Of a DNA stretch of 64,000 nucleotides, positions 362-28,726 are shown piece after piece. A model generated the notes under the pieces. The model searched no databases and was not told the DNA's origin. It was given only the letters and a program-made list of their open reading frames with translations. Source of the stretch: Octopus sinensis (lineage: Eukaryota); NCBI RefSeq assembly GCF_006345805.1, contig NC_043001.1:19158001-19222000 (forward strand), given 5' to 3'. The position numbers and the translations under genes are program-made. Each line of letters begins with the position of its first letter. Within the stretch, counting starts at the first letter, position 1.

Positions 362-650
362 ATAAAAAATCCCAATGCCGTAAGATCTGGCCCAAAGGAT
401 ATGGGTGTTGGAGCGAGACGGAATTGGAAAAAATTTTCAAAACCTACTCGGAAAAGGAATCACCGACAACCACTACTCCAACACCAGAAACCACTACTCT
501 AACACCAGAAACCACTAGTCTAACACCAGAAACCACTAGTCTAACACCAACAACCAAAAATCTAACACTGGTTTATTCTTTGGCCACACTTTTGGTATTA
601 GCGATCATATTTATTCTCTTCTTAATTTTATGGATATCATTTAGACGAAA
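362..650 (+). CDS. Paralogue A, exon encoding Cys-containing juxtamembrane segment, Thr/Pro stalk and TM helix
   Basis: Acceptor ttcttacag| and donor aa|gtaagt, phase 1 to 2. Reads KKSQCRKIWPKGYGCWSETELEKIFKTYSEKESPTTTTPT(PETTxLT)3PTTKNLTLVYSLATLLVLAIIFILFLILWISFRR, a hydrophobic TM followed by a basic stop-transfer. Confidence 0.85.
463..546 (+). repeat. Coding 21-nt tandem repeat x4 (PETTSLT-type mucin-like stalk)
   Basis: Units ccagaaaccactagtctaaca start at 484, 505 and 526, with a variant unit at 463. Exactly these 84 nt are absent from paralogue B. Confidence 0.9.
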
Positions 651-654
651 GTAA

Positions 655-850
655 GTAAAGTTTCTGTTTCGACCCCTGTTGTACTCTTTCGCCCAAAATT
701 TCTCTCAGTCTTTCTTCCTGTTTCTTGAGCAACGCTGCGATGGACTGGCGTCCCGTCCAGCGGGGTGGGGGGGGAGAGACACACATATGCCATAGAAACC
801 GGGAAACCGGGCCCATCAGCCTGGCTTGGCTTGAAAAGGGCGAATATAAA
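655..850 (+). mobile_element. SINE 3' half in intron
   Basis: Contains gcgatggactggcgtcccgtccag...gggaaaccgggccc. A related sequence follows a tRNA-like head at 61900-62215 (-). Confidence 0.6.
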
Positions 851-1502
851 ATACCAAAAAAATAACAGTATTAATAAAGATAATTTCTAACAGGGACACA
901 GGGTAGAAATTTTAGGGCTGGATTAGAAGTGGATACAGTTGTTTAGATATAGTAATATTTAGAGTCCCCAGAACAAAATAAATACAAATCATATCTCGGA
1001 GAGATTTGAATACAAAGCGTAAAGAAACGTAACTAAATTGTGTTGCTTTATTCGTTCAGTCAAAAAATCTATCTCTTATCCATAATTCTTGTTTGAAGGT
1101 GTCTACTCCAGCAATTTGCTGTTGTTTTACTCCAGAGACACAAGCATTATAAGTTAACAAAACACTCGATAATTTACAGTACTTCTACTCTACAACAACC
1201 AATTTTAAAAAATCCATGAAAGCTATTTATAGTGGACTGTAACAGCCAGAAGTAAGTGTTTTCGTTATAAATACCACACATATCAACATAGGTGTTGCCA
1301 GCCTTTCGCCTAATAATCCCGTTGGGATCCCCTTTCACACTGGTTTAATATTTAAAATTTTTTTCTGAAAGAAGAACTGGGTGGTGTTTGGAATCTAAAC
1401 GTAAATGAACGTACCTAAATCTCTCAAAATATTTTAACCGATGCCTTACACATCTTGCCGTTCACGTACCACTTAATGATATTCATTTGGTATTTCCTCC
1501 AG

Positions 1503-1572
1503 ACGAAACTCAACTAATGTTCAAAATGTAAATGAGAACAATCATCCGTATGAAGAAATCGATGAAACCACG
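1503..1572 (+). CDS. Paralogue A, cytoplasmic exon with YEEI motif
   Basis: Acceptor tatttcctccag| and donor acg|gttagt. Phase 2 to 0 exactly bridges the flanking exons. Reads (K)RNSTNVQNVNENNHPYEEIDETT. Confidence 0.82.
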
Positions 1573-2973
1573 GTTAGTACTTACTCTATTCCTCTCTCTC
1601 TATCACACACACACTCTCTCTCCCTCACACTCTTTCCTCCTCTCTTTTCTCCTCCTCCTCTCACTCTCTTTCCGTCTTTTTTTTTTTTATACATGCTTAA
1701 GTTATATTTTGTTATTTGAGTTTTTCACAAAATATTGGGCGATCACACTGCACGGCACCTGGGGTAAGTCTATTCTTCCATAGCCTTCAGTCGACCAAAG
1801 ACTTGTGGGGGGGAAATTAGACTGAAACGAAAAGACAGTATCGTTTGAGAAATAAAGTACATTGCTTCGTAGAGTACGAATGACAATGGAAGTAAAGTGC
1901 AAAGCAATCGGTGGAAAGGTCACCAGTTCACATTTTCTCACTGGTAGTAGTATTATAACCTCGACTATAATAATTAATTGTAGAGAACTGATTCTGTTTC
2001 TCCATCTCTTCCGAACAACAAAAAGTCTTCAGGTGCATCATATGACTTCAGGTATAACAACTTAACTTTCTTCCCTCCCTTATTAGTCTCACGCCCTTCG
2101 TTTTTACTCTTTCAACGTAGCACAGCTTCCGTGGAAGGTCGTAAGGATTAGCAACTCTATACTGACCCCACCACACACGGCTACATCTCGATAAAATGAG
2201 CTAGGGATAGGTAGTATTATTTCCTGTGCCCCTGACTGTCGCACATTTATTTCCCCGCTTCATATACTTTGTTGGGGCAATGAAATATAAGTTTATATAA
2301 CAAGCTTACAAGCGGATGTTTCCGCGCAAAATCTCTCATTTCGCATTTCCATCGATTGTGTCCCCGCAGCCCTTCACTGAAAACAAAATATCAAAACGCC
2401 CCTTAATTGGTCCACCTAGAGCAAAGAGAATGCTTTCGTACCTTCAACAGACGAAGGTAGATCAGTTTCTTTTCACCTGTTCCTGAAAACAACTCAACGG
2501 TTTAGGACTGTTCTGTCCATATTTCAAGCTGATGTTGGAAGCTATTTTGTCAAAACTATTGCCATTAATGCATCTTTCGTTTGGTGAGGTTTGTGTGAGA
2601 TTGCCAGTGGTGGTATTGAATTTATTGTTGTTGTTGCTGTTCCAGGTCTGTCCAACTGGAGAAAATCTATAAACAAATGCATTCCAGCAGAGAACGTCAT
2701 ATTTTTGAAAGATAGTGCGTGTAAGACTCTATTATCTGATTCAGGTGGTAGGGTGTAGTTTGAAGAACGTTTAGTTACCAAAATGATCAGACGGAACTTC
2801 ACTTTAAACAATTGGCCCCTGTTTTATTACATCGAAAAAATAAAATACAATGTAAACCTAGGTGGGATTTGAACTCAAAACGTAAGGAGATATAACGAAA
2901 TACTATAAGGTGACCGTTTCTACCATCCACTCATTCACACGGGTTTATATATTTTATTTTTATTTTATTACAG

Positions 2974-3171
2974 ACAACTATTTCCTTCTGCAATAGTAGT
3001 ATAGTGAATAAAAACACTGCAACAACAACAAACCCAAGAAACATCAGTGAGGAAACATATGAAGCCCTAGAAGAAGAGTCTGCTCCAAGATATGATAAAC
3101 TGGCTTTTAACGAACTGGAAATTGTGAACAATGAGAACAGAAATAACTCTTATCACGTCGTTGAAAAATAA
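2974..3171 (+). CDS. Paralogue A, terminal exon with ITAM-like motif
   Basis: Acceptor ttttattacag|, phase 0. Reads TTISFCNSSIVNKNTATTTNPRNISEETYEALEEESAPRYDKLAFNELEIVNNENRNNSYHVVEK*, with TAA at 3169-3171. Confidence 0.82.
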   Translation, partial: TTISFCNSSIVNKNTATTTNPRNISEETYEALEEESAPRYDKLAFNELEIVNNENRNNSYHVVEK

Positions 3172-3371
3172 AATCTACTGGTGATAACGATACGTTTTAT
3201 AACTTAATAATTAATCAAAATCTGTTACAAGTAGCAATCTGTTACTGTTCGATAACCAAAACCTATCGATAGATGATAACAATGTCTTGATGGTTTTCAA
3301 TAGAATATATCACGTGATACCATTATTGGAGTTATCTCACTTCCTTTTTGTTTTCAGATTTTAAAATGTGA

Positions 3372-3446
3372 GATTTCTTCCCTGAAGACGGGGGAAATTG
3401 ATTCCAACGTCAGATGAGACGAGCCCCCGTCTTCAGGGAAGAAATC
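3372..3446. repeat. Hairpin with 23-bp perfect arms and 29-nt loop, downstream of the paralogue A stop
   Basis: gatttcttccctgaagacggggg ... cccccgtcttcagggaagaaatc. The copy at ~20390-20464 has one G-U change. Confidence 0.9.
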
Positions 3447-3561
3447 CTATATTTGAGGTGTTGACAGAAGGGAGATTAAAGGTGGAATTACGATGGAATA
3501 CGACTTTTCTTCAACCCTTTAATTCTTGATATCATTTCTATTCTGTGTAAGTCGGAACTTT

Positions 3562-3607
<46 letters not shown>

Positions 3608-5610
3608 TAACACCTTGTTCAAGTGTCCTTTATCACAATTACAGACCGATCCAAGGCGTTGTAAATTAAATGGCATAGACGGGTAATCTCCATAAGATCG
3701 TCGGATGAGCTTTATCTGTTATGGACTGGTAGACTTAATCCCGCCAATCGGTCCCTCACCACCACATGGTCCCTGATTGCTTTTAGCGAGGTATACCCTT
3801 TTGCAAAACATTATGTTGCATTGAGATTAAACAGCAACAACTGGATTTACAGAATAAGAACTTAAATAAAACTTTATTTCTGAGAAAGATCTTTTTATTG
3901 TAGCCTCCCTTCATTGAATAACCTCCCCTCGGAAATGTTACTCTGATGCGTATTAAGTTGTTCAAAGTTATTTCCCATCTATAGGATTTATTTATCATTA
4001 TCCTTTTAATCCAGATATTTATGTTCTTTTCACACATCTGATACGTATTGATCTCTTCCATGACGTTTTTTTTTTGTCTTTTTGTTAAATAAATTGAATA
4101 GCAATTGTGAATTGTAACTCATTGATTTCTAATATACGGCCAAAAATTTTGGGTAAAGGGATAGTCGATTAAATCTTTACAGAACTGTATTTATTTTATT
4201 GACTCCTGACAGATGAACGGCAAAGCCGATTTCGATGGTGGTACTTGAACTTAGAAAGCGAATTTAAGCAACTAAATATAGCTATACTATCGATTTTGCC
4301 AATCTTCCGTCCTTAATAATGTTAACAGATTATTTAAAAAACATGTAACATAAATGGGAGAACGTTTGAAGACAGCGCATTTTCCTTGAACAGAGAAACG
4401 GATCATAATTCTTGCAGCAAAATAAACTTCGTTGACGGCAACTAAAAGCCGAAAAGTGGCGTTGATATTATTATTTAGATTCAGACCAATACTAATCAAT
4501 TATATCTATGATGAACGATATTCCAGTCTTAATTATCTTACCTTTTCGTATAACCAGGGCTACATATTCTAATCTTAAGACTGTAGGATGCAATCAAGGT
4601 GCGAAATTCGGTGCTTTCTTCCAGCAGAACAGCTTGTTCGGGCTACATCAGCACTAACAAAGAAAAAATATTGTAAACAGTTACAAGTTGGCAAGACACA
4701 CTTGAAACCAAATTTATATTCAACCAAGAAGAACTGTAAAATAAAATCAGGAAATGAAAATTTCTTCTAAAAATACTAGAAACAAAATCTGATGAATCTA
4801 CGAAATGGTAACAAAATACAGAGAAAAATATATTCGAGATACTCAAGAATACTGAATTCTACCAATGACACATTGTCACTCATTTCAGAGATGGAACGTG
4901 GATCGATTCCAGTTCTTGACTGATACTACTTATTTTATCCACCTCGAAGGAACGAAAAGCAAAGCTCATTTTGGCGAAATTTGAACCCGGAAAGTAAAGA
5001 AAATACCAGAAAGTATTTTGCATGCAACTCTACAGATTTTACAATCAACCTAATTCAGTAACATTCCATATAAATACTTCTAAAATAATAGATAAATGCA
5101 TCTAAAGTATTTCTAATGATTGACCATTTTGTTTACATACCAGCTGGAGACTAATTGTAAACTAACAATAATCGTGAGAAGAATAATTCTGTTACACGGT
5201 TCTCTGGTCTAATTGTGTAATTTTGCTCTAAAATGCCAAGAACAATCCTGGAAACAAGCATTATCTAGAAATTTTAAAAAAGTAAAATTCGGTTTTAAGA
5301 GCGGAACATTCTATACGATTGTAATCATTAAATAAATACCTTTCATCTAGTAACATCACGATTCCTGTTTTATTTTTAATTGAGTTTCAATGAGTTATTT
5401 TATTTCATTTTGTCCCTTCTTCTGCACGTCATTCTGATACTGTCACCATGAGTTGAACCGAACCAGCTACAGTTATTTCGATAAATGTTTCAACTTAGAT
5501 CAGATACCATATTTATTTACTGCTGTTTAAATAATGTTGTTGATTTAGATACAAAGTTCAATGCTTACAGAGACCAAGATTTTTATATAAATAAATATTC
5601 CACAAATATC

Positions 5611-6065
5611 CTTACTTACTTGTACTTGTAACGGCGTTTACCCAGGGCGGGTTTACCCAGCGCAGACCGACCACCTGCGGACCTGAGAGTTCGGAGAGGT
5701 CCTCCTTTATCGTCGTTGCCCAGGTCTTCAGCTGCCGGCCCGTGCGTTTGCGCCAGTTGGGAAGTGGAGTTGGGAGGAGGACATCGCGAATCAGCTCACC
5801 TTCTGGACACCGGACCGCATGACCGAACCACCTTAAGCGCCGTTGTAGAAGCACCGAAGGGAGAAGCCGGAGATTCAGGCGATGACGAAGACCGGCTGTA
5901 GAAACCCGATCAATGCGTCGGCAGCGAAGATTGCGGCGGAGACAATCATTGTCGAACACCTCCAGCCTTCGCTGATCTATTCCCCTCATAGGCCATGTTT
6001 CACAACTACAGAGGAGGATTGTACGACCGACGGCCTGATAGATTCGCCCTTTGGTCACTGCGGAG
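5611..6065 (-). mobile_element. RTE-clade LINE 3' fragment
   Basis: Encodes ILLCSCETW...RRLRWFGHAVR...RTGRQLKTW and ends in a (caagta)n-type tail. It has a ~100-nt internal deletion relative to the IR1 copy at 16678-17222. Confidence 0.9.
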
Positions 6066-6492
6066 ATCTCTCTTCTGTCCTACAAGCACAAAAATCCTAC
6101 ATAAATATGACTCAATAATTTGGCGGATCAGTTTTCAATTTAATCCGTTACATGACAAAAATATTGGCATATACATGACAAACACAGGATAAGGCGTACA
6201 GGTCGCAACACAGCATCTCATTCTATTATTCACCACACCAGGTAATGATGCAGAGAATGATCTTCGTATGAATAGAACATCTTGAAGATATACATCTTAG
6301 ATATTTATGGCTCGCACCTAGTAGTTCGATCAACTACCCTCATAACATATCTCTGCTCGATTATATTTGAGGAATGACAGCATCACCAATAGTCATACAA
6401 AATATAAAATGGACAGCATTGGGTGCATGCCTAACCAGTCGCACTGCATGTCGGAATATGGAATTTTATTCAGTTAGGCTGTCAGTTAGGTA

Positions 6493-7542
6493 CAAGATGT
6501 TTGAAATCCTTCAGTTCTATGGGATACCAGACAAAATCATTTCTGCCATCAAGGTCCTCTACACAGATACGTCTTCAACCATCTTAACCCCTGACGGAGA
6601 AACATCATCTTTCTCAATCAAAGCCAGAATACTGCAGGGAGATACACTCGCCCCATTTCTTTTCATCATTGTCGGTGACTATGTGCTACGTATGTCGTTG
6701 ATACCATCTCTGGCAAGGGCTTTGAAATAAAACCAAGAAGAAGTTCCAGACACCCAGCTGAATACTTGACAGACACTGACTTTGCTGACGACATCGCTCT
6801 TATCAGTGATTCTCTCTCCAATGCCCAGTCTCTTTTACAATCTCTTGAACAAGCCTCAAATTGTGTAGGTCTTTACCTCAATGAGGCCAAGACTGAATAT
6901 ATAAACAAGTGCCTGTCCAACAGTGATTGCGTCATCTATACTCTCAACAATGCGCCCTTAAATATGGTTTCTGATTACAAATATCTTGGGTCATACATAT
7001 CATCATCTGGAAAAGATTTTCTAACTAGAAAGGGTATGGCCTGGTCAGCCTGTAATGACATGCATAAGATCTGGTCATCAAATCTAAGTAGAGACTTCAA
7101 ACTTGAAATCTTCAAAGCCACAGTCGAACCAATTCTACTATATGGCTCAGAAACCTGGACGTTATCAAAGAAGCTTGAGAGGCGGTTGGATGGAACCTAT
7201 ACTTGCCTCCTTATGAGAGCTCAAAATCTCTGGTGGAAGCGTCATCCAACCAAGATGCAAATATATGGGAAACTACCACATGTGTCATCTCTTGTGAAGG
7301 GTTGGAGAGTCCAGTTTGCTGGACATTGTTGTAGAGCTGAAAACGAGGCAATTTCTACTCTTCTCCTCTGGAAGCCATCTGCTCGGGATACCAGAGGGCG
7401 CACACTCTCCTACCCTGATGTAATCTCCAGGGATACAGGCATCCAGCAACAGGACCTCCGTATTGCGATGATGGACCGTGAAGTCTGGCTTAGCATGGTA
7501 AATTCCATTGTCTCGACCTCGGTCGATCAATGATGATGATGA
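6493..7542 (+). mobile_element. 5'-truncated RTE-clade LINE inserted only in the left IR1 arm
   Basis: RT motifs ILQGDTLAPFLF, DFADDIAL, YKYLGS and ILLYGSETW, one stop, and a (tga)n tail. The empty site ggta|tatctgg is present in the right arm near 16245. Confidence 0.93.
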
Positions 7543-8452
7543 TATCTGGAACTACAAATCTGTAAATTGCACCTCGTCATTCGCGACTCGACTATTTCCG
7601 CACCAAATGACTTCTTGGTCATCATCAACTTGATGTTTGGCAACGAAAAAGCCCGTATATGATCAACTGAATTATCAGATATAACATCCAAATCAGCCCT
7701 AAATTACACTCTACCACCTCGAAAAAGAAAGGGCACATTTTGAAATGTAACAACAAGTGGCCCAGAATTGTTCTTCGTTAAAAGCATATCCATTTAAATA
7801 AAGCACGATTACATTTCTCTTGGAAAGTTATTTTTCGTGTAAGAAAATAAAAGTTGTTTTCCTATGCGTTCATAACAGCCCGGTGTCAAGTGCATTATAC
7901 GATAGACAGGCGTTAAATAGTAACAACATGATTCAATGGTGTGATTTAAAAGACATTCACCTCATTCTGATATATTAAAGGAAGACACATGATTAAGTAA
8001 ACATAAAAACAGTTTTATTTCATTGGGAAACTCTTATTGGACATAATATACTACTTTCCCACTTGATCTACAACATTAACTATTGAGTGTAGGCATGACT
8101 ATTTCACAGAATTGCCTGCGATAGATGCTAGTTCATGCTGTGGGCCCAAGTGCTTTTCTTTTTTTTTTTATTGTACAGCCACTTTTTTGTTAGCTAAAGA
8201 TGTTGCAAGTTGAGAAATACTATCGATATTACCTCAAAAATATGTGCCATTTGTGTCCAACACAAAGAGGATTTTGAGAACAACATCTACTGCGCGACCC
8301 CCATCCAAGGGATGAGTATGGCAGCAATACCCGAAGAAGCAGCTGCAATAGTCAGTCCTTTGTGTTGACAAATATTCATAAAATGTCTACAAAATTAGGA
8401 ATGCTTTTCCAGTTCTGTCGATAAAATAAACTCCAGCACCACTTTACTGAAA

Positions 8453-8846
8453 CTAGCAGTATCGCCCGGTGTTGCTCGGGTTTGTTTCGACCCTTTAGAA
8501 TTGAAACTTTTGAAAAGTAAAAATTTTGCATTATATAGCTTGTTATTCTCTTTAAGTGAACATTTTTCTGGTTAAAATACACCGAAAAATGGCGACACAG
8601 CAGTCAAAAAATCGTAAAAAATAAGGATTTTCATAGAAAAAGAAGCACCTTTTTGATTTAAATAATTTTTGGTCTTAACATGGTCCGATTTGAATTTTTT
8701 TCTTCTACGGAATGAAGAACAAGCCTTCTTCTATCATACTCTCAATTTTGGTCAACTTGCGCCGCAGAGTCTCGGAGGAGATAGTGTTAGTTGAAGGCTG
8801 CCAAACCTGCCATACACAGACAACTTCAGCTTTATATATAGAGAGA
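8453..8846 (-). mobile_element. Non-autonomous Helitron-like element
   Basis: Minus strand reads A|TCtctatatataaagctg ... cccgagcaacaccgggcgatactgCTAG|T (5' TC, 3' hairpin and CTAG, A/T target). Sister copy at 45211-45536. Confidence 0.8.
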
Positions 8847-9219
8847 TTTATGAAAAATAGAATAAGCTTTCCTCGTGTTGGCAGTAAATTCGGGTTTGTA
8901 AATATAATGTGATACGTCTTTTAAAATTTCTGTTCTACATTATTAACTTCAGTGTGGTTAGGTTGAGAAAGGCCATATGTTTGATGTTCTTGGAATTTAT
9001 ATTTTTTTGTCAACGAGGACTGCCTTATAATTTCATCTACGTAAATCTATTTCAATGTCACCATAAATATTTTTAGATGCTTGAAACCTTCAAGTTCATC
9101 ATGTTATTTGTCAGACTGAATCGCTTACAGCGTTTTAACAGCAAACGGGAAAGAACGCTCAACACTTGTTTGAAATACAGAAACTATTATGTTGCTGGCA
9201 TCAGATTTACAGGGTATCA

Positions 9220-9530
9220 TTCTTCAGTAGTCCAAGTATAAAATATTTCTATCTCTAAGTGTGGCGAACCTTCATCAGTTTTATTCGAAGATCTTGCTGA
9301 GAGCTTGTGCTCTGATCTTTTTGTAGAGGTGTCATAAAAAGAAGTGCTTATGTTAACTGACGTTTGTATTACTGGGCATCATTTTTCGGTAGTCCAAGTA
9401 TAAAACATGTCTGTCTAAGAGTGTGGCAATCCTTCATAAGTTTTAATCGAAGATTTTGCAGAGAACTTGTGTTCTGCCCATCATGGTGAGGAGTCGTAAA
9501 AAGAAGTGTTGATGTTGACTGACGTTTGTA
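9220..9530. repeat. Diverged 162-bp tandem duplication
   Basis: tccaagtata occurs at 9231 and 9393, and the rest of the two units aligns by eye. Confidence 0.8.
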
Positions 9531-9704
9531 TTTGTCAGTGACAGAGTTTGATATGAATATATACTTATATAAAAAATAATAAAACATGTGTGTGTGTGTG
9601 TGTGTGTGTGTGTACATGGATGCTTGCGCATTTGTGTGAAAGTAACGTAAATTCCTCCATCCACCCATACATACATACATACTTACATACATACATACAT
9701 ACAC

Positions 9705-10125: not shown

Positions 10126-10169
<44 letters not shown>

Positions 10170-11171: not shown

Positions 11172-13575
11172 TTACTTACTACAATTTATTTTATTCCTGT
11201 AGATTTTCAGGAATGTAGAAGAAAATTTATGTACGCAAAAGGGGATCACGTCCGTAAATTTTTTCAGAATATGCGGTCCATAACACCTAAGGATGGTAAG
11301 TGATTCCCTTATGCATAGCCTACACTTGCTAATATTTCTCTTGAAGTTTGGGATTTTAGAAATGATGGACCATTCTAGGAAATAATTCTTATTGTTCTTT
11401 CTCAGGTTGTGTATATGCGATGCAAGTGTAGTTGAGTTAAAGTATTTTTCGTTAGTAAAAGAGCTCATGTGTGACCTATATCGCGCCTTAAAATCCATCG
11501 TACTACCTATATAAAATTTGTTTAGATTATCTACATCCCTAACTACACATTTATATATTACGTTGGTGACCAGACATGAACCACCCAAAGGACATAATTT
11601 GGATTTCCTACAGTTACATGTCTTTTCGGGGCCTTTCCTAATTTTTTTCCTATTATTATCTTTACTTATTTTATCTCCAGTTCCAGGCGGGTTTCGCTCA
11701 TTCCTTCCCTCTAAACTACCCTTATTATATGGGTTCGATGAGTCCGGTAAAGGTAGACCATTTATAGCTTTGGTACTCAGCTTTACAGGATTATCAACCA
11801 CATTTCCTTGGTCATCCTCAAAGGAACTTTTTCTGTCGTTCCACCTAGTAAGCTTGCTTCTATTGATTGAAGCAATGATGGAAGCAAAGTTAGGCATTAC
11901 AGAATAGGAGAATTTTATTGTCGACTTATTGCAGATGCTATAATATTTGTGGTCCTTTGGGAAGTTCTCCTTCAGAATCTTAAAAAATAGTTTTGGTAAA
12001 TTCCTTACTCTAAGGGAGAAAGGGGGAGCGAACCAAATAACTTCCCTTATTCTAGGCCGTGAGCTTCCTGTTTTGTTTAACTTCTTATCAGGATTTTTAA
12101 TTTCCTTATACCTACCCTTACTGCTGTTATCCCTAAACATATTATTATTATTTAAAGGCCTTTTATTATTCCTAGACGTATTATTATTATTATAATTATT
12201 ATTCAAAAACTTATTATTATTACAGTATTTATTATTGTATTTATCTGTAGTAATTGCAACTTGCTCAATTGGCAAACCAGCCATCCTGTTTTTTAGTCTA
12301 GTATTAAGGATATAGAATATTTTAGACTTGTAACCACTTAAACTTAGGGCATTATTATACACTGGTGCATGTTGCTCAAAAGTCTCTTCGTTCGCAGATA
12401 AATTGGATATTCTAGTTGAAATCGCAGTTATGATACTATCTATTGTGGATTTCGGATGATTGGATGACACATTGATATATGCTATCGATTTATTAGTCTT
12501 ACGAAAGGGATAGTATAGACCGGTATTAAGACACAAGGTAACGTCCAAGAAGTTTACTACCCTAGAGTTACTGTCGTAGATGATATCAAGATTTAAAAAA
12601 TCTTTCAAAAAGCTTCTCAACGACTTCTTTAATCTGTTCAATTCGGTCTTAGAGAGGCCCTGCACGGCAAAGAGGGCATCATCCCTATATAATCCACCAG
12701 TAAGGTTAGGGAAGCTTTTCCTAACTTCCGAGAGTAGATACAGGCCAACCAAGTCAGTCACCTGCGCAGAATCTGATGACCCCATGGTAATATCAAAGAA
12801 ATTTTCTGAGTCGGCTCTTTGCCATTCACTCTCATTATAGGAGACAAGTGTTTCTCTTGCCGTTAAAATTACCTCTAAATCCGACTTAGGTATCTCAACA
12901 AATCTTCTTGCGAAGATTAAGGCTTTGTTTAGCAAAATAGGGCTTATAGACCTATAGTAATTCGAAATGTCGAATTGTATAAAGCTGAGCTTAGGTTTAT
13001 CTCTGATAGAGTTAAATCAAAGTATTACATCCTCCGTTCCTTTCCATAAGGGAAGTTCGACCTTATCCCTCACAGTTGGGATAATGCTATCGATAATGAA
13101 TTTACTGATTCTGCCCAAATCAGATTTTGTCGGACATATCAATCTAATCGAAGGATTAGATAGAAAGTCAGGCTTATGGTCCTTCAATAAAGCATGGGGA
13201 GTATTTGGATCATAAGGTTGGGTTCTATCAAGCAGGCCCAAACCAGATATTATTTTCAAATGGTTGGCATTAATCTTATTTATGGCATTTTACCTGCATG
13301 TTTATAGCCAGATTTAAGTTCTTTTAAAATCAATTCATCATATAAATCTGGTGGTATAGAGTAAATGTTCCCAGTTTTATCCGACAATACATGTAGGTCG
13401 GGAGACGATTTCATAGACGAAATCTTCTGAGATAGAATCTTCTGGAATGGATTGGTGTATTTTGAAAATTTCAGGCGTTTGATTAATTTCATCAGGTCCT
13501 GTTCAAACTTGGCAAGAGCTGGGTTGGACGGAGGATTTCTACAGGTTTTGAGGTTAAAGTTATTTTTCTCGCCGG
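11172..13575 (-). pseudogene. PLE RT-GIY-YIG ORF (Naiad-type), disrupted
   Basis: Motifs SDKTGNIY, LLKDHKPDF..PSIRLICPTKSDLGRISK, FIQFDISNYY, ITMGSSDSAQV, GLYRDDAL, NFLDVTL, CNC..CPLGGSC, FYIGST and CRLC..C.H. There is a frameshift near 13285 and a TGA at 13017-13019 in a Trp-like position. Confidence 0.92.
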
Positions 13576-13589
13576 TAAAAGCAATTAAG

Positions 13590-14085
13590 ATTCAAGTGAG
13601 TTCTGTTGAATTCACATGAATGCGGTACTTAACTTAGATGCACCAGAAATCTATATGGTATTAACCATAAGATAATGCGGGGTGATTATAAACAGGAAAA
13701 AAGCAACAAAAATGGATCAATATTTCGGTACAATTGTTTCGTACGAAGACCAGCTTTATTAAGACTGCAAATATTGCAGTAAATATAAGTGACCCGTACT
13801 CATCAGCCGAAAAAACATCTGAGTTCTCCAAACATCTAAGTGGGTGATGTTACACTCCTGAAACATCAGGGATAGTTCTATAAAAATAAGATTTAGGTAA
13901 CAAACGGACTTCTAAAAGTTCTTTAATGTTGCACAGTCATATAACAGGTTTTTAAAAAGTATTTTAAAAAACCTCTTAGTTTCCCAGAAAATGAAAATGT
14001 AAATCCATCCATATTGAAGTAAGTTTGATTTCTGGAGATATGAGGAGAGATTTCATACTCACAGAAGATGCATTTATCCATAATT
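13590..14085 (-). mobile_element. PLE pLTR upstream of the Naiad ORF
   Basis: 13692-14085 is the reverse complement of 14694-15086 and contains a hammerhead. The tail 13590-13690 resembles 51355-51440. Confidence 0.85.
13723..13812 (-). ncRNA. Type I hammerhead ribozyme
   Basis: Inverted copy of 14967-15056 with all core nucleotides intact. Confidence 0.88.
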
Positions 14086-14693
14086 AATTTTATCTAATTT
14101 TTAATCTAATTTAGGTAAACCAACTTAAAGCAAATAAGTTAATTTTGTAATTCTTTTATTTACTACTAGTAAATATTGCTAATCCCATAAAAATAATATA
14201 ACGATTTTTCATTATGAAAAACAATACTCTCAATCCTTTCTTTTGACCCCTAAATGTAGTCCCAAAGTCTGCCAATGTATAAGTAGTAACATTAACATTT
14301 TAGACCTCCTTTCTAGTGTTGCACTGAAATCTGTTAACGTTTTTTTTCCTATAGTGATAACCTTTGACCCGCTTTTACCTTCCCATATCCTCTTTATATA
14401 GCAATTAACGACGGTATACTGGTCAAGATTAGCATTCCTCCTTAAAGCTCTTAGATTCTTGCAAATTCTGAATCAGTCAGTTTGTCTCCACTGAAATAAA
14501 CTATTCTGCGTAGTTTGATATTTACACCCCCTTCCACTCTCAGTTACCCCAATATACCCTATGTGAGTGATTGTCTCTACGCTCCATTAACTCTCCTTCA
14601 ACAAATAGAATTCTAACATAGCAGTTTTGAGAAATTATCAGAAATGTAACCAGTATATCATCACACATCAGGAAACACACTTTATTATGGACT

Positions 14694-15086
14694 AATTATG
14701 GATAAATGCATCTTCTGTGAGTATGAAATCTCTCCTCATATCTCCAGAAATTAAACTTACTTCAATATGGATGGATTTACATTTTCATTTTCTGGGAAAC
14801 TAAGAGGTTTTTTAAAATACTTTTTTAAAACCTGTTATATGACTGTGCAACATTAAAGAACTTTTAGACGTCCGTTTGTTACCTAAATCTTATTTTTATA
14901 GAACTATCCCTGAGGTTTCAGGAGTGTAACATCACCCCCTTAGATGTTTGGAGAACTCAGATGTTTTTTCGGCTGATGAGTACGGGTCACTTATATTTAC
15001 TGCAATATTTGCAGTCTTAATAAAGCTGGTCTTCGTACGAAACAATTGTACCGAAATATTGATCCATTTTTGTTGCTTTTTTCTTG
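14694..15086 (+). mobile_element. Inverted PLE pLTR copy ending in (TA)n
   Basis: ~395-bp inverted repeat of 13692-14085 around a ~610-bp spacer. Confidence 0.88.
14967..15056 (+). ncRNA. Type I hammerhead ribozyme
   Basis: tttcgg-CTGATGA(14973)-gtacg...cgtac-GAAAC(15039)-aatt-GTA(15048)-ccgaaa, with a perfect 6-bp stem I. Confidence 0.9.
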
Positions 15087-15101
15087 TATATATATATATA
15101 T

Positions 15102-15690
15102 ATGTTTACGCCCGATATGGGCATGGAAAAAACATGTAAATTGGTGGAACAAATATGCCACAGTACAGGTTCGCTTCGACAGCGAAGAAAAAGCGAAAGA
15201 ACTTTCGACGCTCGCCTTACAGTCGGAAAAACTGATTTTAATTCCGACCTACCTTGGTCAACGTCTGACAAAATTTTCGATAAAAAGTGTCCCTCCAGAA
15301 ATAGAGTCACAATGGCTGTTGTTAGCCATTTGCTACAACATGGAGGAGAACATAAACATCTCGAATTTGCCGCCTTGGAGCAAGAGAAATGGTCGGGGAA
15401 AATGATTCAGTTATAGATGCAAATAGATCAAAACCAAATCAATAGCATTCCACACCAAATTGAGCAGCCCGACGGCAATAACCATTGCGTGGTGGTAGAG
15501 GGTAGTAGGCATCGTTGTTACTTGTGTGGCAGCGAGGAACACCTAAGATGTGATTGCCCAACAGCAAAAAACAACAAAAACCAAAACAAAAACTACAACA
15601 AGGAAAAAGTGCAAAGAGAAAAGAAAAAAAAAGAAAAGCACTTGGGCCCACAGCATGAACTAGCATCTATCGCAGGCAATTCTGTGAAAT
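15102..15690 (+). mobile_element. LINE ORF1 (gag-like) 3' fragment with CCHC zinc knuckle
   Basis: CLRPIWAW...VQVRFDSEEKAKEL...RCYLCGSEEHLRCDCP, split over two ORFs. It runs into the inner end of the right IR1 arm. Confidence 0.75.
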
Positions 15691-16677
15691 AGTCATGCTT
15701 ACACTCAATAGTTAATGTTGTAGATCAAGTGGGAAAGTAATATATTATGTCCAATAAGAGTTTCCCAATGAAATAAAACTGTTTTCATGTTTACTTAATC
15801 ATGTGTCTTCCTTTAATATATCAGAATGGGATGTATGTCTTTTAAATCACACCATTGAATCATGTTGTTACTATTTAACGCCTGTCTATCGTATAATGCA
15901 CTTGACACCGGGCTGTTATGAACGCATAGGAAAACAACTTTTATTTTCTTACACGAAAAATAACTTTCCAAGAGAAATGTAATCGTGCTTTATTTAAATG
16001 GATATGCTTTTAACGAAGAACAATTCTGGGCCACTTGTTGTTACATTTCAAAATGTGCCCTTTCTTTTTCGAGGTGGTAGAGTGTAATTTAGGGCTGATT
16101 TGGATGTTATATCTGATAATTCAGTTGATCATATACGGGCTTTTTCGTTGACAAACATCAAGTTGATGATGACCAAGAAGTCATTTGGTGCGGAAATAGT
16201 CGAGTCGCGAATGACGAGGTGCAATTTACAGATTTGTAGTTCCAGATATACCATAACTGACAGCCTAACTGAATAAAATTGCATATTCCGACATGCAGTG
16301 CGACTGGTTAGGCATGCACCCATTGCTGTCCATTTCATATTTTTGTATGACTATTGGTGATGCTGTCATTACTCAAATATAATCGAGCAGAGATATGTTA
16401 TGAGGGTAGTTGATCGAACTACTAGGTGCGAGCCATAAATATCTAAGATGTATATCTTCAAGATGTTCTATTCATACGAAGATCATTCTCTGCATCATTA
16501 CCTGGTGTGGTGAATAATAGAATGAGATGCTGTGTTGCGACCTGTACGCCTTATCCTGTGTTTGTCATGTATATTCCAATATTTTTGTCATGTAACGGAT
16601 TAAATTGAAAACTGATCCGCCAAATTATTGAGTCATATTTATGTAGGATTTTTGTGCTTGTAGGACAGAAGAGAGAT

Positions 16678-17222
16678 CTCCGCAGTGACCAAAGGGCGAA
16701 TCTATCAGGCCGTCGGTCGTACTATCCTCCTCTGTAGTTGTGAAACATGGCCTATGAGGGGAATAGATCAGCGAAGGCTGGAGGTGTTCGACAATGATTG
16801 TCTCCGCCGCAATCTTCGCTGCCGACGCATTGATCGGGTTCCTACAGCCGGTCTTCGTCATTGCCTGAATCTCCGGCTTCTCCCTTCGGTGCTTCTACAA
16901 CGGCGCTTAAAGTGGTTCGGTCATGTGGCCCGGCGTCCAGAAGGTGAGCTGATTCGCGATGTCCTCCTCCCAACTCCACTTCCCAACTGGCGCAAACGCA
17001 CGGGCCGGCAGCTGAAGACCTGGGCAACGACGATAAAGGAGGACCTCTCCGAACTCTCAGGTCCGCAGGTGGTCGGTCTGCGCTGATGGAACCGCGAATG
17101 GCTGGCTATCTCCAGTGACCTCGCACAGGACCGTCGAGCGTGGTTCGTGATGCCGTCAGGACCAGAGAAGGAGCCGGCTCAACTCGCCCCGGGTAAACGC
17201 CGTTACAAGTACAAGTAAGTAA
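16678..17222 (+). mobile_element. RTE-clade LINE 3' fragment (IR1 copy)
   Basis: Same ORF as 5611-6065, with the complete 3' end ...ggtaaacgccgttacaagtacaagtaag. Confidence 0.9.
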
Positions 17223-17883
17223 GGATATTTTTGGAATATTTATTTATATAAAAGTCTTGGTCTCTGAAAACATTTATCTTTGTATCTAAATCAACAACAT
17301 TGCTTAAACAGCAGTAAATAAATATGATATCTGATCTAAGTTGAAACATTTATCGAAATAACTGTAGCTGGTTCGGTTCAACTCATGGTGACAGTATCAG
17401 ACTGACGTGCAGAAGAAGGGACAAAATGAAATAAAATAACTCATTGAAACTCAATTAAAAATAAAACAGGAATCGTGATGTTACTAGATGAAAGGTATTT
17501 ATTTAATGATTACAATCGTATAGAATGTTCCGCTCTTAAAACCAAATTTTACTTTTTTAAAATTTCTAGATAATGCTTGTTTCCAGGATTATTCTTGGCA
17601 TTTTAGAGCAAAATTACACAATTAGACCAGAGAACCGTGTAACAGAATTATTCTTCTCACGATTATTGTTAGTTTACAATTAGTCTCCAGCTGGTATGTA
17701 AAAAAAATGGTCAATCATTAGAAATACTTTAGATGCATTTATCTATTATTTTAGAAGTATTTATATGGAATATTACTGAATTAGGTTGATTGTAGAATCT
17801 GTAGAGTTGCATGCAAAATACTTTCTGGTATTTTCTTTACTTTCCGGGTTCAAATTTCGCCAAAATGAGCTTTGCTTTTCGTT

Positions 17884-18885
17884 TGTAGCGGTATCTGACA
17901 TCCTCACTGTTTGAGAGACACGGCAGGAATGATCTCGTTTGAGATTACAGCCATCTTTGGCTGAGTTGTTCCTGTTGTGTCCACTGACCTGATTGGTTGA
18001 CATGTGGCGCGATTTGTCTCTACTTATTTCGCGCCACTGTCCAAAGCCAACCAATCACGGCCTTTGGTTAAGGTCCAATTTTCCTAGGCTCTGTTGAGCC
18101 ACCTTTCTTGTGTATAAAGGATTCTTCTCAGTATACTTGGTCTTTGACTCCTGACCTTCTAAGGTCTAGTCACTGACCACAGAGCTACTCAATATGTTCC
18201 AGTTCCAGCGACAGACGATTGCTCCTGCTACAACCAGCGACGACTCTAACATACACCAGCACCGCAGAACACCTTCTTTCTCCGCCGCCGTCGTCACCAT
18301 CATTGTACCAACTTCAAGTCGTCTCTACCATCGTCCACTTTAGATATGTATACACCAACTTCACAGACTCACGCTGATAGAATGAATCCCTTCGCCAAGT
18401 AAAACAGTCCATCTGAAGAATTCTATATTAGGAGAACCAGGTCGGTGATTGAGACCACAGCCGCGGCTCGACAATATTCGCCAACCGGTCTCTGCCCGAG
18501 ACACATCTTTATATGGAACTCTTACATATCGTGTACCTTATGAACTGTAAACCAATCTCCATCATTAACTCTATGCTCTGTACTTTCTGTGTCACACGCA
18601 TTCACCCTTATTTGTATCTGTCACACACACGAACACACAGACACAAACACTTGTTGCATGCACACATACACAACACTTGCTAGCACTCACAACCCTCTAA
18701 CCTTAACACCTTGTAAATAAAATCTTATCTTCTCTCAAACAGTGGAACGGCTTGTCGTCTTTCATCTATATTCTGTTGGCACTGCATTGTATAAATTGTA
18801 TTTATGGCTTATCTTATTTCGTTAGGGATACGACCGTGTGACTTACCTATGTCGCCAACCTCCAAATACGGTCGTATTTCCTACA
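17884..18885 (+). mobile_element. Solo LTR (1002 bp), probably Ty3/gypsy
   Basis: TGTAG...CTACA termini and a 4-bp TSD (cgtt/cgct). The empty site is seen in the left arm at 4941-4960, and aataaa occurs near 18716. Confidence 0.88.
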
Positions 18886-20229
18886 CGCTCCTCCGAGGTG
18901 GATAAAATAAGTAGTATCAGTCAAGAACTGGAATCGATCCACGTTCCATCTCTGAAATGAGTGACAATGTGTCATTGGTAGAATTCAGTATTCTTGAGTA
19001 TCTCGAATATATTTTTCTCTGTATTTTGTTACCATTTCGTAGATTCATCAGATTTTGTTTCTAGTATTTTTAGAATAAGAAATTTTCATTTCCTGATTTT
19101 ATTTTACAGTTCTTCTTGGTTGAATATAAATTTGGTTTCAAGTGTGTCTTGCCAACTTGTTTACAATATTGTTTCTTTGTTAGTGCTGATGTAGCCCGAA
19201 CAAGCTGTTCTGCTGGAAGAAAGCATCGAATTTCGCACCTTGATTGCATCCTACAGTCATAAGATTAGAATATGTAGCCCTGGTTATACGAAAAGGTAAG
19301 ATAATTAAGACTGGAATATCGTTCATCATAGATATAATTGATTAGTATTGGTCTGAATCTAAATAATAATATCAACGCCACTTTTCGGCTTTTAGTTGCC
19401 GTCAACGAAGTTTATTTTGCTGCAGGAATTCTGATCCGTTTCTCTGTTCAAGGAAAATGCGCTGTCTTCAAACGTTCTCCCATTTATGTTACATGTTTTT
19501 GAAATAATTTGTTAACATTATTAAGAACGGAACATTGGCAAAATCGATAGTATAGCTATATTTAGTTGCTTAAATTCGCTTTCTAAGTTCAAGTACCACC
19601 ATCGAAATCGGCTTTGCCGTTCATCTGTCAGGAGTCAATAAAATAAATACAGTTCTGTAAAGATTTAATCGACTATCCCTTTACCCAAAATCTTTGGCCG
19701 TATATTAGAAATCAATGAGTTACAATTCACATTTGCTATTCAATTTATTTAACAAAAAGACAAAAAAAAACGTCATGGAAGAGATCAATACGTATCAGAT
19801 GTGTGAAAAGAACATAAATATCTGGATTAAAAGGATAATGATAAATAAATCCTATAGATGGGAAATAACTTTGAACAACTTAATACGCATCAGAGTAACA
19901 TTTCCGAGGGGAGGTTATTCAATGAAGGGAGGCTACAATAAAAAGATCTTTCTCAGAAATAAACTTTTATTTAAGTTCTTATTCTGTAAATCCAGTTGTT
20001 GCTGTTTAATCTCAATGTAACATAATGATTTGCAAAAGGGTATCCCTCGCTAAAAGCAATCAGGGACCATGTGGTGGTGAGGGACCGATTGGCGGGATTA
20101 AGTCTACCAGTCCATAACAGATAAAGCTCATCCGACGATCTTATGGAGATTACCCGTCTATGCCATTTAATTTACAGTGCCTTGGATCGGTCTGTAATTG
20201 TGATAAAGGACACTTGAACAAGGTGTTAC

Positions 20230-20274
<45 letters not shown>

Positions 20275-20684
20275 AAAGGTCCGACTTACACAGAATAGAA
20301 ATGATATCAAGAATTAAAGGGTTGAAGAAAAGTCGTATTCCATCGTAATTCCATCTTTAATCTCCCTTCTGTCAACACCTCAAATATAGGATTTCTTCCC
20401 TGAAGACGGGGGTTCGTCTCATCTGACGTTGGAATCAATTTCCCCTGTCTTCAGGGAAGAAATCTCACATTTTTAAAATGTAAAAACAAAAAGGAAGTGA
20501 GATAACCCCAATAATGGTATCACGTGATATATTATATTGAAAACCATCAAGGCATTGTTATCATCTATCGATAGGTTTTGGTTATCGAACAGTAACAGAT
20601 TGTTACTAGTAACAGATTTTGATTAATTATTAAGTTATAAAACGTATCGTTATCACCAGTAGATTTTATTTTTCAACGACGGGA

Positions 20685-20864
20685 TTAAGAGTTATTTCTG
20701 TTCTCATTGTTCACAATTTCCAGTTCGTTAAAAGCCAGTTTATCATATCTTGGAGAAGACTCTTCTTCTAGGACTTCATATGTTTCCTCACCGATGTTTC
20801 TTGGGTTTGTTGTTGTTGCAGTGTTTTTATTCACTATACTACTATTGCAGAAGGAAATAGTTGT
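20685..20864 (-). CDS. Paralogue B, terminal exon with ITAM-like motif
   Basis: Same acceptor as paralogue A. Reads TTISFCNSSIVNKNTATTTNPRNIGEETYEVLEEESSPRYDKLAFNELEIVNNENRNNS*. A 1-nt insertion creates TAA and removes YHVVEK. Confidence 0.8.
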   Translation of the reverse strand, partial: TTISFCNSSIVNKNTATTTNPRNIGEETYEVLEEESSPRYDKLAFNELEIVNNENRNNS

Positions 20865-21153
20865 CTGTAATAAAATAAAAATAAAATATATAAACCCGTG
20901 TGAATGAGTGGATGCTAGAAACGGTCACCTTATAGTATTTCGTTATATCTCCTTACGTTTTGAGGTCAAATCCCACCTAGGTCTACATTGTATTTTATTT
21001 TTTCGATGTAATAAAACAGGGGCCAATTGTTTAAAGTGAAGTTCCGTCTGATCATTTTGGTAACTAAACGTTCTTCAAACTACACCCTACCACCTGAAAC
21101 AGATAATAGAGTCTTACACACATTAGAGAGAGAGGAAGAGAGTAAGTACTAAC

Positions 21154-21247
21154 CGTGGTTTCATCGATTTCTTCATACGGATGATTTTTCTCATTTACAT
21201 TTTGAACATTTGAACTGGCGAATTTATCATCTGGAGTTGAGTTTCGT
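21154..21247 (-). CDS. Paralogue B, cytoplasmic YEEI exon
   Basis: Splice sites are conserved and there is an in-frame 24-nt insertion. Reads RNSTPDDKFASSNVQNVNEKNHPYEEIDETT. Confidence 0.82.
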
Positions 21248-22102
21248 CTGGAGGAAATACCAAATGAATATCATTAAGTGGTACGTGAACGGCAAGATGT
21301 GTAAGGCATCGGTTAAAATATTTTGAGGGTTTTAGGTACGTTTATTTACGTTTAGATTCCAAACACCACCCAGTTCTTCTTTCAGAAAAATATTCTAAAT
21401 ATTAAACCATTGTGAAAGGGGATCCCATCGGGATTATTAGGCGAAAGGCTGCCAAAACCTATGTTGATATGTGTGTGGTATTTATAACGAATACACTTAC
21501 TTCTGGCTGTTACAGTCCACTATAAATAGCTTTCATGGATTTTTTAAAATTGGTTGTTGTAGAGTAGAAGTACTGTAAATTATCGCGTGTTTTGTTAAAT
21601 CATAATGCTTGTGTCTCTGGAGTAAACCAATAGCAAACTGCTGGAGTAGTCAACTTCAAACAAGAATTACGGATAAGAGATAGATTTTTTGACTGAACGA
21701 ATAAAGCAACACAATTTAGTTACGTTTCTTTACGCTTTGTATTCAAATCTCTCCGAGATATGGTTTGTATTTATTTTGTTCTGGGGACTCTAAATATTAC
21801 TATATGTAAACGACTGTATCCACTTCTAATCCAGCCCTAAAATTTCTATCCTGTGTCCCTGTTAGAAATTATCTTTATTAATACTGTTATTTTCTTTGTA
21901 TTTTGTACTCGCCCTTTTCAAGCCTAGCCAGGCTGATGGGCCCGGTTTCCCGGTTTCTATGGCATATGTGTGTGTCCCCCCCCCCCGCCCCGCTGGACGG
22001 GACGCCAGTCCATCGCAGCGTTGCTCAAGAAACAGGAAGAAAGACTGAGAGAAAGTTTGGGCGAAAGAGTACAACAGGGGTCGGAACAGAAACTTTACTT
22101 AC

Positions 22103-22310
22103 TTTCGTCTAAATGATATCCATAAAATTAAGAAGAGAATAAATATGATCGCTAATACCAAAAGTGTGGCCAAAGAAGCAACCAGTGTTAGATTTTTGGT
22201 TGTTGGTGATTCCTTTTCCGAGAAGGTTTTGAAAAATTTTTCCAATTCCGTCTCGCTCCAACACCCAGATCCTTTGGGCCAGATCGTATGGCATTGGTGT
22301 TTTTTAGAAG
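22103..22310 (-). CDS. Paralogue B, juxtamembrane and TM exon (short stalk)
   Basis: Acceptor ttctcacag| and donor aa|gtaagt. Reads SKKHQCHTIWPKGSGCWSETELEKFFKTFSEKESPTTKNLTLVASLATLLVLAIIFILFLILWISFRR. Confidence 0.85.

Positions 22311-28643: not shown

Positions 28644-28726
<83 letters not shown>

Follow-up and report, generated by a model that had tools for sequence, protein, structure and literature searches.

Two convergent genes in a 64,000-nucleotide window of the Octopus sinensis genome (window position 1 is CM016863.1:19,158,001, the whole stretch analysed being 19,158,001-19,222,000) encode members of a family of single-pass membrane proteins that we found only in octopods. The genes, here called copies A and B, sit on the two arms of an inverted duplication, and both encode a long tail with a YEEI motif and a sequence resembling the ITAM (immunoreceptor tyrosine-based activation motif). 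We hypothesize, at slightly less than an even chance, that this real convergent pair encodes lineage-specific signalling receptors or transmembrane adaptors, which would act through tyrosine phosphorylation of their tails.

Both loci are already in RefSeq, as uncharacterised genes. The spliced peptide of copy A is identical (100%) to the C-terminal 184 residues of "uncharacterized protein LOC115211728" (P0001), and that of copy B is 100% identical to the C-terminal part of isoforms X1 and X2 of LOC115211668 (P0004, P0005). Exact spliced mapping places the three exons of each copy as the final three of six coding exons; each of the pair's six exons has an AG acceptor and a GT donor, the phases run 1-2, 2-0 and 0-stop, and the same exon boundaries are called by the O. 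vulgaris annotation. This mapping bears out the three phase-matched exons per arm proposed in the initial annotation, which was made from the letters alone, and together with a convergent pair in O. vulgaris it confirms two real tail-to-tail protein-coding genes. A literature search on the family's four LOC identifiers returned no paper that mentions them.

Starting at the N-terminus, the proteins combine a Cys-rich region, a variable Thr/Pro mucin-like stalk, a near-invariant membrane helix, an RRKR stop-transfer patch and a tail of ~90 residues. The helix, LATLLVLAIIFILFLILWISF, is identical in A and B and contains no charged residue. It is the one hydrophobic segment (Kyte-Doolittle 19-residue mean ~3.2) and has RRKR on its C-terminal side. 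The initial annotation correctly noted that stalk length and C-terminal motifs vary between the copies. An AlphaFold2 model of full-length paralogue C, built on a 10-sequence alignment, has a predicted local distance difference test score (pLDDT) of 40.5 with the membrane helix as its only confident part, and the tail is predicted to be disordered. No Pfam domain scores above threshold in any family member; matches of four members to TMEM51, ECSCR and Cadherin_C_2 are sub-threshold, driven by the helix or by composition, and were rejected as homology.

Searches covered 5.8 billion proteins and, with family profiles, 1.84 billion (1.84e9) cluster representatives. The 14 family proteins are all octopod (O. 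sinensis, O. vulgaris, O. bimaculoides and Argonauta hians), and none of those representatives is a member from outside Octopoda. Subfamily matches have E-values of 1e-41 to 1e-112, and the profile search reached distant members at 1.5e-80 (P0012) to 2.1e-68 (P0016). In O. vulgaris four genes (C, D, B and A) lie inside ~150 kb, and we infer the position of the O. sinensis copies C and D by comparison with that cluster. A distant single-copy member, LOC115212034, is on the same O. sinensis chromosome, 109 Mb away; its O. bimaculoides counterpart likewise lies far from that species' cluster, and Argonauta also has a member. LOC115212034 shares with A to D an ectodomain signature (DPCDC..Y..C, PW..C, CRKIWP..W), a membrane helix with a basic patch directly after it, YEE[IV], a YxxI motif and, close to the C-terminus, YN[IV][VL], as well as intron positions and phases (1/2/0). 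Taken together, these comparisons indicate that the family consists of four genes (A to D) in a quickly evolving local cluster and an old single-copy member held in common with Argonauta.

Selective constraint on the family is unevenly distributed. Exons as a whole are conserved no better than alignable segments composed mostly of intron. Over the 53 codons from LATLLVL... to ...YEEIDE the proportion of nonsynonymous differences (pN) is 0.024-0.048, against 0.17-0.29 in the ectodomain and distal tail (Fisher P 8e-5 to 2e-9), and the same block is ~96% identical between O. vulgaris A and O. bimaculoides, compared with 82-87% for alignable mostly-intron segments. On these values purifying selection is concentrated on the helix, the RRKR patch and the YEEI region, whereas the ectodomain and distal tail evolve at about the neutral rate. 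Reading frames are intact even though ~5% of random point changes would create stop codons, and on this evidence we take the genes to be functional.

In the tails, copy A reads EETYEAL-EEESAPR-YDKL and copy B reads EETYEVL-EEESSPR-YDKL, and both fit [D/E]xxYxx[L/I]-x(6-8)-Yxx[L/I]. Both copies also carry YEEI, and A has a further YHVV that is gone from B; these motifs, all listed by the initial annotation, are plainly read in the sequence and are largely conserved across paralogues and species. The motif with a spacing of 7 recurs in O. vulgaris A and B, in paralogue C and in O. bimaculoides isoform X2. When motifs were counted over an alignment of ten close family members, YEEI was present in 8/10 (the distant subfamily has YEE[IV]), the first ITAM tyrosine was invariant, YxxL-x7-Y[DN]KL occurred in 8/10 and YH[VI]V in 6/10. 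The eight columns formed by the Y and +3 positions of the four motifs show 0.25 changes per column, against 0.70 in the other tail columns. Copy D (L007; P0009, P0010) is a second natural tail variant in the cluster: it has lost YEEI (NEEIYEN), and in O. sinensis D a frameshift after YD destroys the second half of the ITAM.

We propose that A and B are single-pass surface glycoproteins whose cytoplasmic tail would be phosphorylated on tyrosine, the conserved tail tyrosines then serving as phosphorylation-dependent docking sites. In such a mechanism pYEEI would hold a Src-family kinase via its SH2 domain, and the doubly phosphorylated YxxL-x7-YxxL would then recruit a tandem-SH2 kinase of the Syk/Shark type. 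The recruitment step is modelled on the oyster receptor CgIgR, an ITAM-bearing haemocyte receptor that signals from the ITAM through Syk to ERK and shows ITAM-Syk coupling operating in molluscs (PMC6994640). Like the octopus proteins, CgIgR is a mollusc single-pass membrane protein whose tail fits the D/ExxYxxL/I-x(6-12)-YxxL/I consensus. It differs in having five immunoglobulin (Ig) domains and experimental support, whereas the octopus proteins have no Ig domain, no detectable CgIgR homology and no signal peptide and also carry YEEI and YHVV. The O. vulgaris haemocyte transcriptome paper contains no mention of Syk, Src, SH2 or ITAM.

Several observations weigh against the signalling hypothesis. 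The greater conservation of the motif columns over other tail columns has a permutation P of 0.077, and the ITAM-like motif belongs to the distal part of the tail, in which pN is close to its synonymous equivalent (pS). The old subfamily lacks the second ITAM tyrosine, a frameshift removes it from P0009, and the P0010 model stops after YENL and does not include it; in the O. bimaculoides isoform P0011 both tyrosines and their spacing are kept, with YEDQ replacing the first YxxL. Pairwise ratios of nonsynonymous to synonymous rates (dN/dS) for the last three exons across the family are 0.7-1.2. None of the family gene models has a signal peptide or an N-terminal hydrophobic stretch, so a topology with the N-terminus outside needs type III insertion of an N-terminal domain of 100-150 residues. 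Type III insertion of so large a domain is unusual, which is the main weakness of a receptor function; the other options are wrongly annotated 5′ ends or an inverted topology. Finally, all four motifs also fit the YxxO endocytic sorting consensus (O = hydrophobic), and sequence by itself cannot separate SH2 docking from adaptor-complex sorting.

It is possible, then, that the tail motifs serve trafficking. The proteins would be sialomucin-like glycoproteins (compare endolyn/CD164 and CD43) in which YEEI, YEAL, YDKL and YHVV act as endocytic or lysosomal sorting signals for adaptor protein (AP) complexes, and B's loss of YHVV would alter its trafficking and not its signalling. Endolyn/CD164-type sialomucins combine a Thr/Pro stalk of the O-glycosylation type, a Cys-rich module, one helix and a near-C-terminal YHxO, and the octopus Thr/Pro stalk, Cys-rich region and near-C-terminal YHVV resemble that layout. 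Every tail tyrosine of A and B has I, L or V at +3; besides YEEI, the motif best kept as far as Argonauta is the near-C-terminal YN[IV][VL] / YH[VI]V, and the pairing that defines an ITAM is not conserved in the old subfamily. Other features of the tail fit sorting less well. The spacing is exactly 7 in every member with both YxxL halves, despite common tail indels elsewhere; acidic residues precede the tyrosines (EETY, HPYEEIDE), as is typical of kinase/SH2 motifs; and at ~90 residues the tail is much longer than typical sorting tails. Compared with endolyn/CD164 specifically, the octopus tail is far longer and has four tyrosine motifs, and there is no sequence homology. We consider sorting as the sole role of these motifs unlikely, while granting it appreciable weight; SH2 docking and sorting are not mutually exclusive.

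Comparison of A with B bears on how the pair evolves. Between the O. sinensis copies we counted 11 replaced amino acids (from 13 nonsynonymous nucleotide changes) against a single synonymous change, in agreement with the earlier count of 11 against 0-1; seven replacements are N-terminal of the membrane-helix core, four are in the tail, and the core is identical. The suggestion of positive selection drawn from those counts is not upheld. A ratio of 13:1 over 355 nonsynonymous and 95 synonymous sites is no significant departure from neutrality (binomial P=0.17), and exon divergence (16/473 = 3.38%) equals that of flanking noncoding (intron) sequence (53/1638 = 3.24%). The first 40 nt of exon 4 (362-401) do hold a cluster of six copy-fixed A/B substitutions and a 3-nt indel. 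Five of the changes fall within 22 nt, which has a Poisson probability of 2.4e-7 at the noncoding rate and is therefore non-random, and the codon preceding the conserved Gln-Cys differs in every lineage (TCC, CAC, ACT, AAT). This patch could reflect either focused diversifying selection or a single complex mutational event. Gene conversion of the B patch by another of the paralogues compared was rejected, as the patch is found only in the two B copies.

The indels between A and B (3, 84 and 24 nt) all preserve the frame, as originally described, and the same holds for coding indels across the family (3, 84, 42, 24, 9 and 3 nt); the out-of-frame exceptions are a 1-nt insertion that adjoins the stop codon of B and a single frameshift in D. 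The 84-nt indel equals four units of a 21-nt tandem repeat, and stalk length differs in all four genes. O. sinensis B indeed has no PETT repeats, but the loss of the stalk, which had been attributed to copy B as such, is specific to O. sinensis B because O. vulgaris B keeps its stalk. The 24-nt difference arose by deletion in O. sinensis A, and PDDKFASS is present in every other family member. The 1-nt insertion gives copy B an early TAA and so removes YHVV, again as proposed. If the tails signal as we suggest, copy B would be a derived variant with an altered membrane-proximal ectodomain and without the C-terminal YHVV, and not an inhibitory partner of A.

Near-neutral divergence also raises the possibility that A and B are redundant, drifting, transcribed lineage-specific open reading frames (ORFs) under little or no selection, with B (and D) becoming pseudogenes and the motifs being compositional accidents passed on through common descent. 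The A/B exons diverge like introns, the 13:1 ratio is not distinct from neutral, the family dN/dS is as given above, exon 4 is less conserved between paralogues A and C than the surrounding, mostly intronic segments (74% vs 81-87%), and B has a premature stop and D a frameshift. Such drift is nevertheless hard to reconcile with the strong constraint on the helix-to-YEEIDE block, with the retention of ORFs, splice sites and frame in three Octopus species, with the conservation of a family with YEEI and the same intron phases as far as Argonauta, or with the truncated form of B, which has stayed intact in both O. sinensis and O. vulgaris since before their split. We regard drift as distinctly doubtful.

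A reversed topology seems to us quite improbable, although it would account for the lack of a hydrophobic N-terminal segment in every member and for an in-frame stop 13 codons upstream of the B ATG. The Cys-rich N-terminus, which starts with MG, would then be cytosolic, and the Asn/Ser/Thr-rich tail would be lumenal or extracellular and N-glycosylated, its motifs irrelevant to SH2 signalling. The A tail does contain five N-x-S/T sequons (NST, NSS, NKT, NIS and NNS), and copies C and D start MGNDFT and MGKDFT, fitting a loose N-myristoylation pattern; A and B, however, start MGKECK, which misfits it. From the positive-inside rule we infer the opposite orientation, with the N-terminus outside and the tail in the cytoplasm: RRKR (KKxKK in the distant subfamily) directly follows the helix, and the flank on the N-terminal side is acidic or neutral. 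The Thr/Pro mucin-like stalk and a disulfide-type Cys pattern, weakly like the CBM14 domain, likewise point to an extracellular N-terminus.

The genomic arrangement of the pair is that of a palindrome. Window positions 1-8167 match the reverse complement of 22670-15624, with 94-99% identity per high-scoring segment pair (self-BLAST and a repeat finder) and an overall substitution divergence of 2.5% (arms ~97.5% identical). Beyond 22670, arm B is matched by the part of A outside the window (L003) and by the two O. vulgaris copies, to ~33100; since similarity extends on the B side to ~30-33 kb, whole genes were duplicated. Genes A and B point towards each other across a spacer of 7.4 kb, and 17.5 kb separates their 3′ ends. 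In O. vulgaris, which was assembled separately (OX597818.1), a B-like gene (P0003) lies at 50,428,384-50,449,377 on the + strand and an A-like gene (P0002) at 50,468,024-50,498,598 on the - strand; the distance between the two 3′ ends is 18.6 kb. Both O. sinensis arms align collinearly with the O. vulgaris arms to which they correspond, two A-only segments (1603-2712, 1.1 kb, and 6493-7541, 1.0 kb) are present in O. vulgaris A too, and the premature stop of copy B (TCT TAA TCC CGT) is letter-for-letter the same in both species. An assembly artefact, in which two haplotypes or a fold-back read had been merged into a palindrome, would sit well with an arm divergence of only ~2.5% and with a 100-N gap that interrupts gene A a short way upstream of the window, but misassembled alleles, the condition under which the initial annotation would have fallen, are already effectively refuted and of negligible probability, because the convergent pair, its spacer, the copy-specific kb indels and the B-specific TAA all recur in the separate O. 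vulgaris assembly, 37 sites group the sequences by copy across both species, and the window holds zero Ns.

The presence in O. vulgaris of the same pair, arrangement, kb indels and B stop places the duplication before the split of the two species. The family was first described as young; the duplication, the changes in the B ectodomain and the truncation of B in fact all came before the O. sinensis/O. vulgaris split. We aligned the four arms (A and B of each species) and counted site patterns over positions 125-8160 of O. sinensis A. Among 5,294 noncoding columns, 30 group the arms by copy, 15 by species and 9 crosswise; for the 470 coding columns the counts are 7, 0 and 3. Copy-grouping sites occur at 357-3818, in the gene body, and species-grouping sites at 4176-7762, in the inner arms. 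O. vulgaris carries a 117-nt segment in each of its arms (L001 37413-37529 and L002 28950-29065) that neither O. sinensis arm has (window ~100 and ~22572). Such agreement between the two arms of one species speaks for gene conversion between them since the species diverged. Divergence is similar in all three comparisons, 2.52% between A and B within O. sinensis, 2.25% for A between species and 2.32% for B between species. Read most simply, these patterns reflect a duplication that slightly preceded the split, after which the arms underwent patchy gene conversion with each other. A crosswise pattern is seen at window positions 3046 and 3065 of copy A and the matching B positions, in exon 6, which correspond to Ser/Gly (NISEE/NIGEE) and Ala/Val (YEAL/YEVL). 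There O. sinensis A equals O. vulgaris B and O. sinensis B equals O. vulgaris A, which could be due to old polymorphism or to reciprocal exchange between the arms.

The full gene B spans 20685-41848 on the - strand, and ~1-2 kb around its first coding exon is 91-97% conserved among paralogues. The upstream exons of gene A lie outside the window and are hidden in the O. sinensis assembly by the 100-N gap (L003 11335-11434, CM016863.1), ~23 kb upstream of window position 1. The gap stands in place of ~20 kb that O. vulgaris has, among it coding exons 1 and 2 of gene A, and for this reason the RefSeq model of LOC115211728 is chimeric, with an odd, repeat-derived 5′ end that looks like a transposon (MKGKNAEQITSMILKQLEMDDINIQDCRGQ...). 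A loss of exons 1 and 2 from O. sinensis copy A was considered and rejected, as the break coincides with the gap. Just upstream of gene B exon 3, the intron sequence at ~29298-29360 (-) translates to YYPITLESTENNNLTF. This stretch is a degenerate copy of exon 2's 3′ part (YY..S.SNDSCSLCC) and thus evidence of an old internal duplication; in copy A the corresponding sequence is read through by the RefSeq model.

Other known systems resemble the octopus family in part. Drosophila Draper and C. elegans CED-1 are invertebrate single-pass receptors with an ITAM-like motif to which Shark binds after phosphorylation by Src42A; this pairing of a Src-family kinase with a tandem-SH2 kinase on a tail ITAM is the scheme we adopt for the octopus proteins, and Draper is one of the invertebrate ITAM receptors tied experimentally to Src/Syk kinases. 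Draper differs in its EMI/EGF repeats, signal peptide and NPxY motif and has no sequence relationship to the octopus family; Pfam and hidden Markov model comparisons found no link of the family to Draper/CED-1. The vertebrate adaptors LAT, PAG/Cbp, NTAL, SIT and LAX are type III proteins with no cleavable signal peptide, one helix and a long disordered tail with several YxxL/I/V motifs, and Src/Csk docking of the PAG type resembles the use we propose for YEEI. The absence of a signal peptide is thus a shared trait. Adaptors of the LAT/PAG type, however, have ectodomains of 4-20 residues and usually a palmitoylated juxtamembrane CxxC, whereas the octopus proteins have an N-terminal region of 100-150 residues and no Cys after the helix (WISFRRKRNST), which sets them apart from that class.

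The vertebrate KIR, Ly49, PIR, SIRP and CD300 pairs are similar in being neighbouring recent duplicates with similar ectodomains and different tails. In those pairs a tail with an immunoreceptor tyrosine-based inhibitory motif (ITIM) is opposed to a short tail with a charged helix residue that recruits an ITAM adaptor, an opposition absent in the octopus pair. Both octopus tails are ~90 residues long, with the same YEEI and ITAM-like motif, and neither is a short tail joined to a charged helix. No ITIM ([S/I/V/L]xYxx[I/V/L]) is found in the tail of copy A or B; YHVV is not one because Asn occupies position -2 (it is preceded by N-S), and the YHIV of paralogue C is preceded by N-I. The proposal of a paired-receptor family has to be dropped in its immunological, activating/inhibitory sense, because there is no ITIM, the helices are identical and uncharged, and B lacks only YHVV. 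A Scortum barcoo protein (P0014), a teleost V-set Ig receptor-like sequence, matches the stalk, helix and YEEI part of the family profile at E=1.5e-6 with three repeats, and its tail reads ...YANV...REYEEIRED; the likeness is probably convergence on the same tail layout, not homology.

As for the ectodomain, the old subfamily gives the sole domain-type Pfam match, with its N-terminal module C..DPCDC..Y..C..G....C..T. The match is to CBM14 (peritrophin-A, PF01607), at 16.6 bits (E=0.0089) in P0016 and 13.7 bits in P0012, below the cut-off of 22.1. Copies A to D have no CBM14 match, and the corresponding exon of A and B has degenerated further. The AlphaFold2 model of the P0016 (LOC115212034) ectodomain is of moderate confidence, with a pLDDT of 75.7 and a predicted template modelling score (pTM) of 0.67. 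A Foldseek search of this model against the PDB returned nothing at E<=0.001; the best match was Aplysia EHEP (8in3, E=0.99, probability 0.25, 42 aligned columns), which we take to be built of peritrophin-A domains. The ectodomain profile searched against PDB sequences gave one chance match only (ribosomal uL2, E=0.57). A CBM14-like ectodomain is a lead only. A bolder version of the signalling hypothesis, which we think improbable as a whole, is that octopods have their own innate immune or chemosensory receptor family without a signal peptide, combining a CBM14-like and possibly chitin- or glycan-binding ectodomain, an adjustable mucin stalk and a nearly invariant helix that couples these to a YEEI for Src docking and an ITAM for Syk docking. 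In that case the 19-Mb cluster would diversify its ectodomains through palindromic duplication, patchy gene conversion and repeat slippage, with the six exon 4 changes as the footprint of diversifying selection.

Cephalopod immune and surface-recognition receptors are poorly known, and few invertebrate ITAM receptors, oyster CgIgR (PMC6994640) among them, have been experimentally tied to Src/Syk kinases. If the octopus tails are phosphorylated and recruit Src and Syk, they would add a lineage-specific receptor family with a previously undescribed ectodomain and a natural variant series suited to probing motif function (with or without YHVV, the second ITAM tyrosine and YEEI, the stalk ranging from 0 to 4 repeats). 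Should the tails have no such use, this is an ordinary fast-evolving orphan gene pair, already in RefSeq. The points of interest are an undescribed octopod-restricted family with a strongly conserved helix-to-YEEI block, an ITAM-like motif and a possible CBM14-like ectodomain, and the locus itself, a clean invertebrate autosomal palindrome whose gene pair has undergone region-specific gene conversion in two sister species.

Features of the gene pair and of the inverted duplication, in window positions
Feature	Position	Strand	Description
Duplication arm A	1..8167	+	runs past window start; gene A 3′ half and 5 kb of 3′ flank; collinear with O. vulgaris A locus L001
Gene A exon, third from last coding	362..650	+	membrane-proximal ectodomain QCRKIWP..W, Thr/Pro stalk, membrane helix, RRK; phase 1 in, 2 out; exact match to P0001
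21-nt tandem repeat, 4.8 copies	468..568	+	PETT(T/S)LT stalk units; Tandem Repeats Finder and protein alignment
Gene A exon, second from last	1503..1572	+	RNST..NHPYEEIDETT; 24 nt shorter through the deletion unique to O. sinensis A
Gene A last coding exon	2974..3171	+	EETYEAL-x7-YDKL, YHVVEK, stop codon
Unique repeat-rich spacer	8168..15623	.	collinear with O. vulgaris
Duplication arm B	15624..30069	-	as far as 22670, pairs with the arm A sequence inside the window
Gene B (LOC115211668) last coding exon	20685..20864	-	EETYEVL-x7-YDKL; early TAA at 20687-20685
Gene B exon 5	21154..21247	-	RNSTPDDKFASS..NHPYEEIDETT
Gene B exon 4	22103..22310	-	SSKKHQCHTIWP..W, membrane helix, RRK; without PETT stalk repeats
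Gene B exon 3	29187..29294	-	SRGKRNK..DDECAPCYIEIK; exact spliced mapping of P0004
Gene B exon 2, Cys-rich	32635..32748	-	ECKVKKKEKRFPPCDCVSY..CSLCCIKKFC; skipped in RefSeq isoform X2 (P0005)
Gene B first coding exon, 10 nt	41839..41848	-	ATG GGA AAA G = MGK only

The remaining features of the window are repeats and mobile-element remains. The spacer contains a nested 400-nt inverted repeat (13687-14086 / 14693-15092) and an Asn-rich ORF of 587 aa at 11172-12935 (-) with no Pfam match even at E<=1. The C-terminus of this ORF resembles by eye a GIY-YIG-type nuclease (NVIYKC..FYIGST), and it may belong to a Penelope-like element. A reverse-transcriptase fragment at 6766-7533 (+) lies inside an A-only insertion. 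Further downstream, ORFs at 58078-59605 (-) match the Pfam reverse-transcriptase family RVT_1 with 31 and 35 bits in an island of 54% GC, and the element is probably a retroelement of the long interspersed nuclear element (LINE) type. An array of ~1.2 kb at 55096-56312, microsatellite-like with ATAC/ATGT-type units, produces spurious long ORFs on both strands (HTYIHTYI..., MYVCMYVC...). A second inverted repeat, unrelated to the receptor genes, pairs 47847-50751 with 60487-64000, is 92-97.5% identical in several blocks and runs past the window end.

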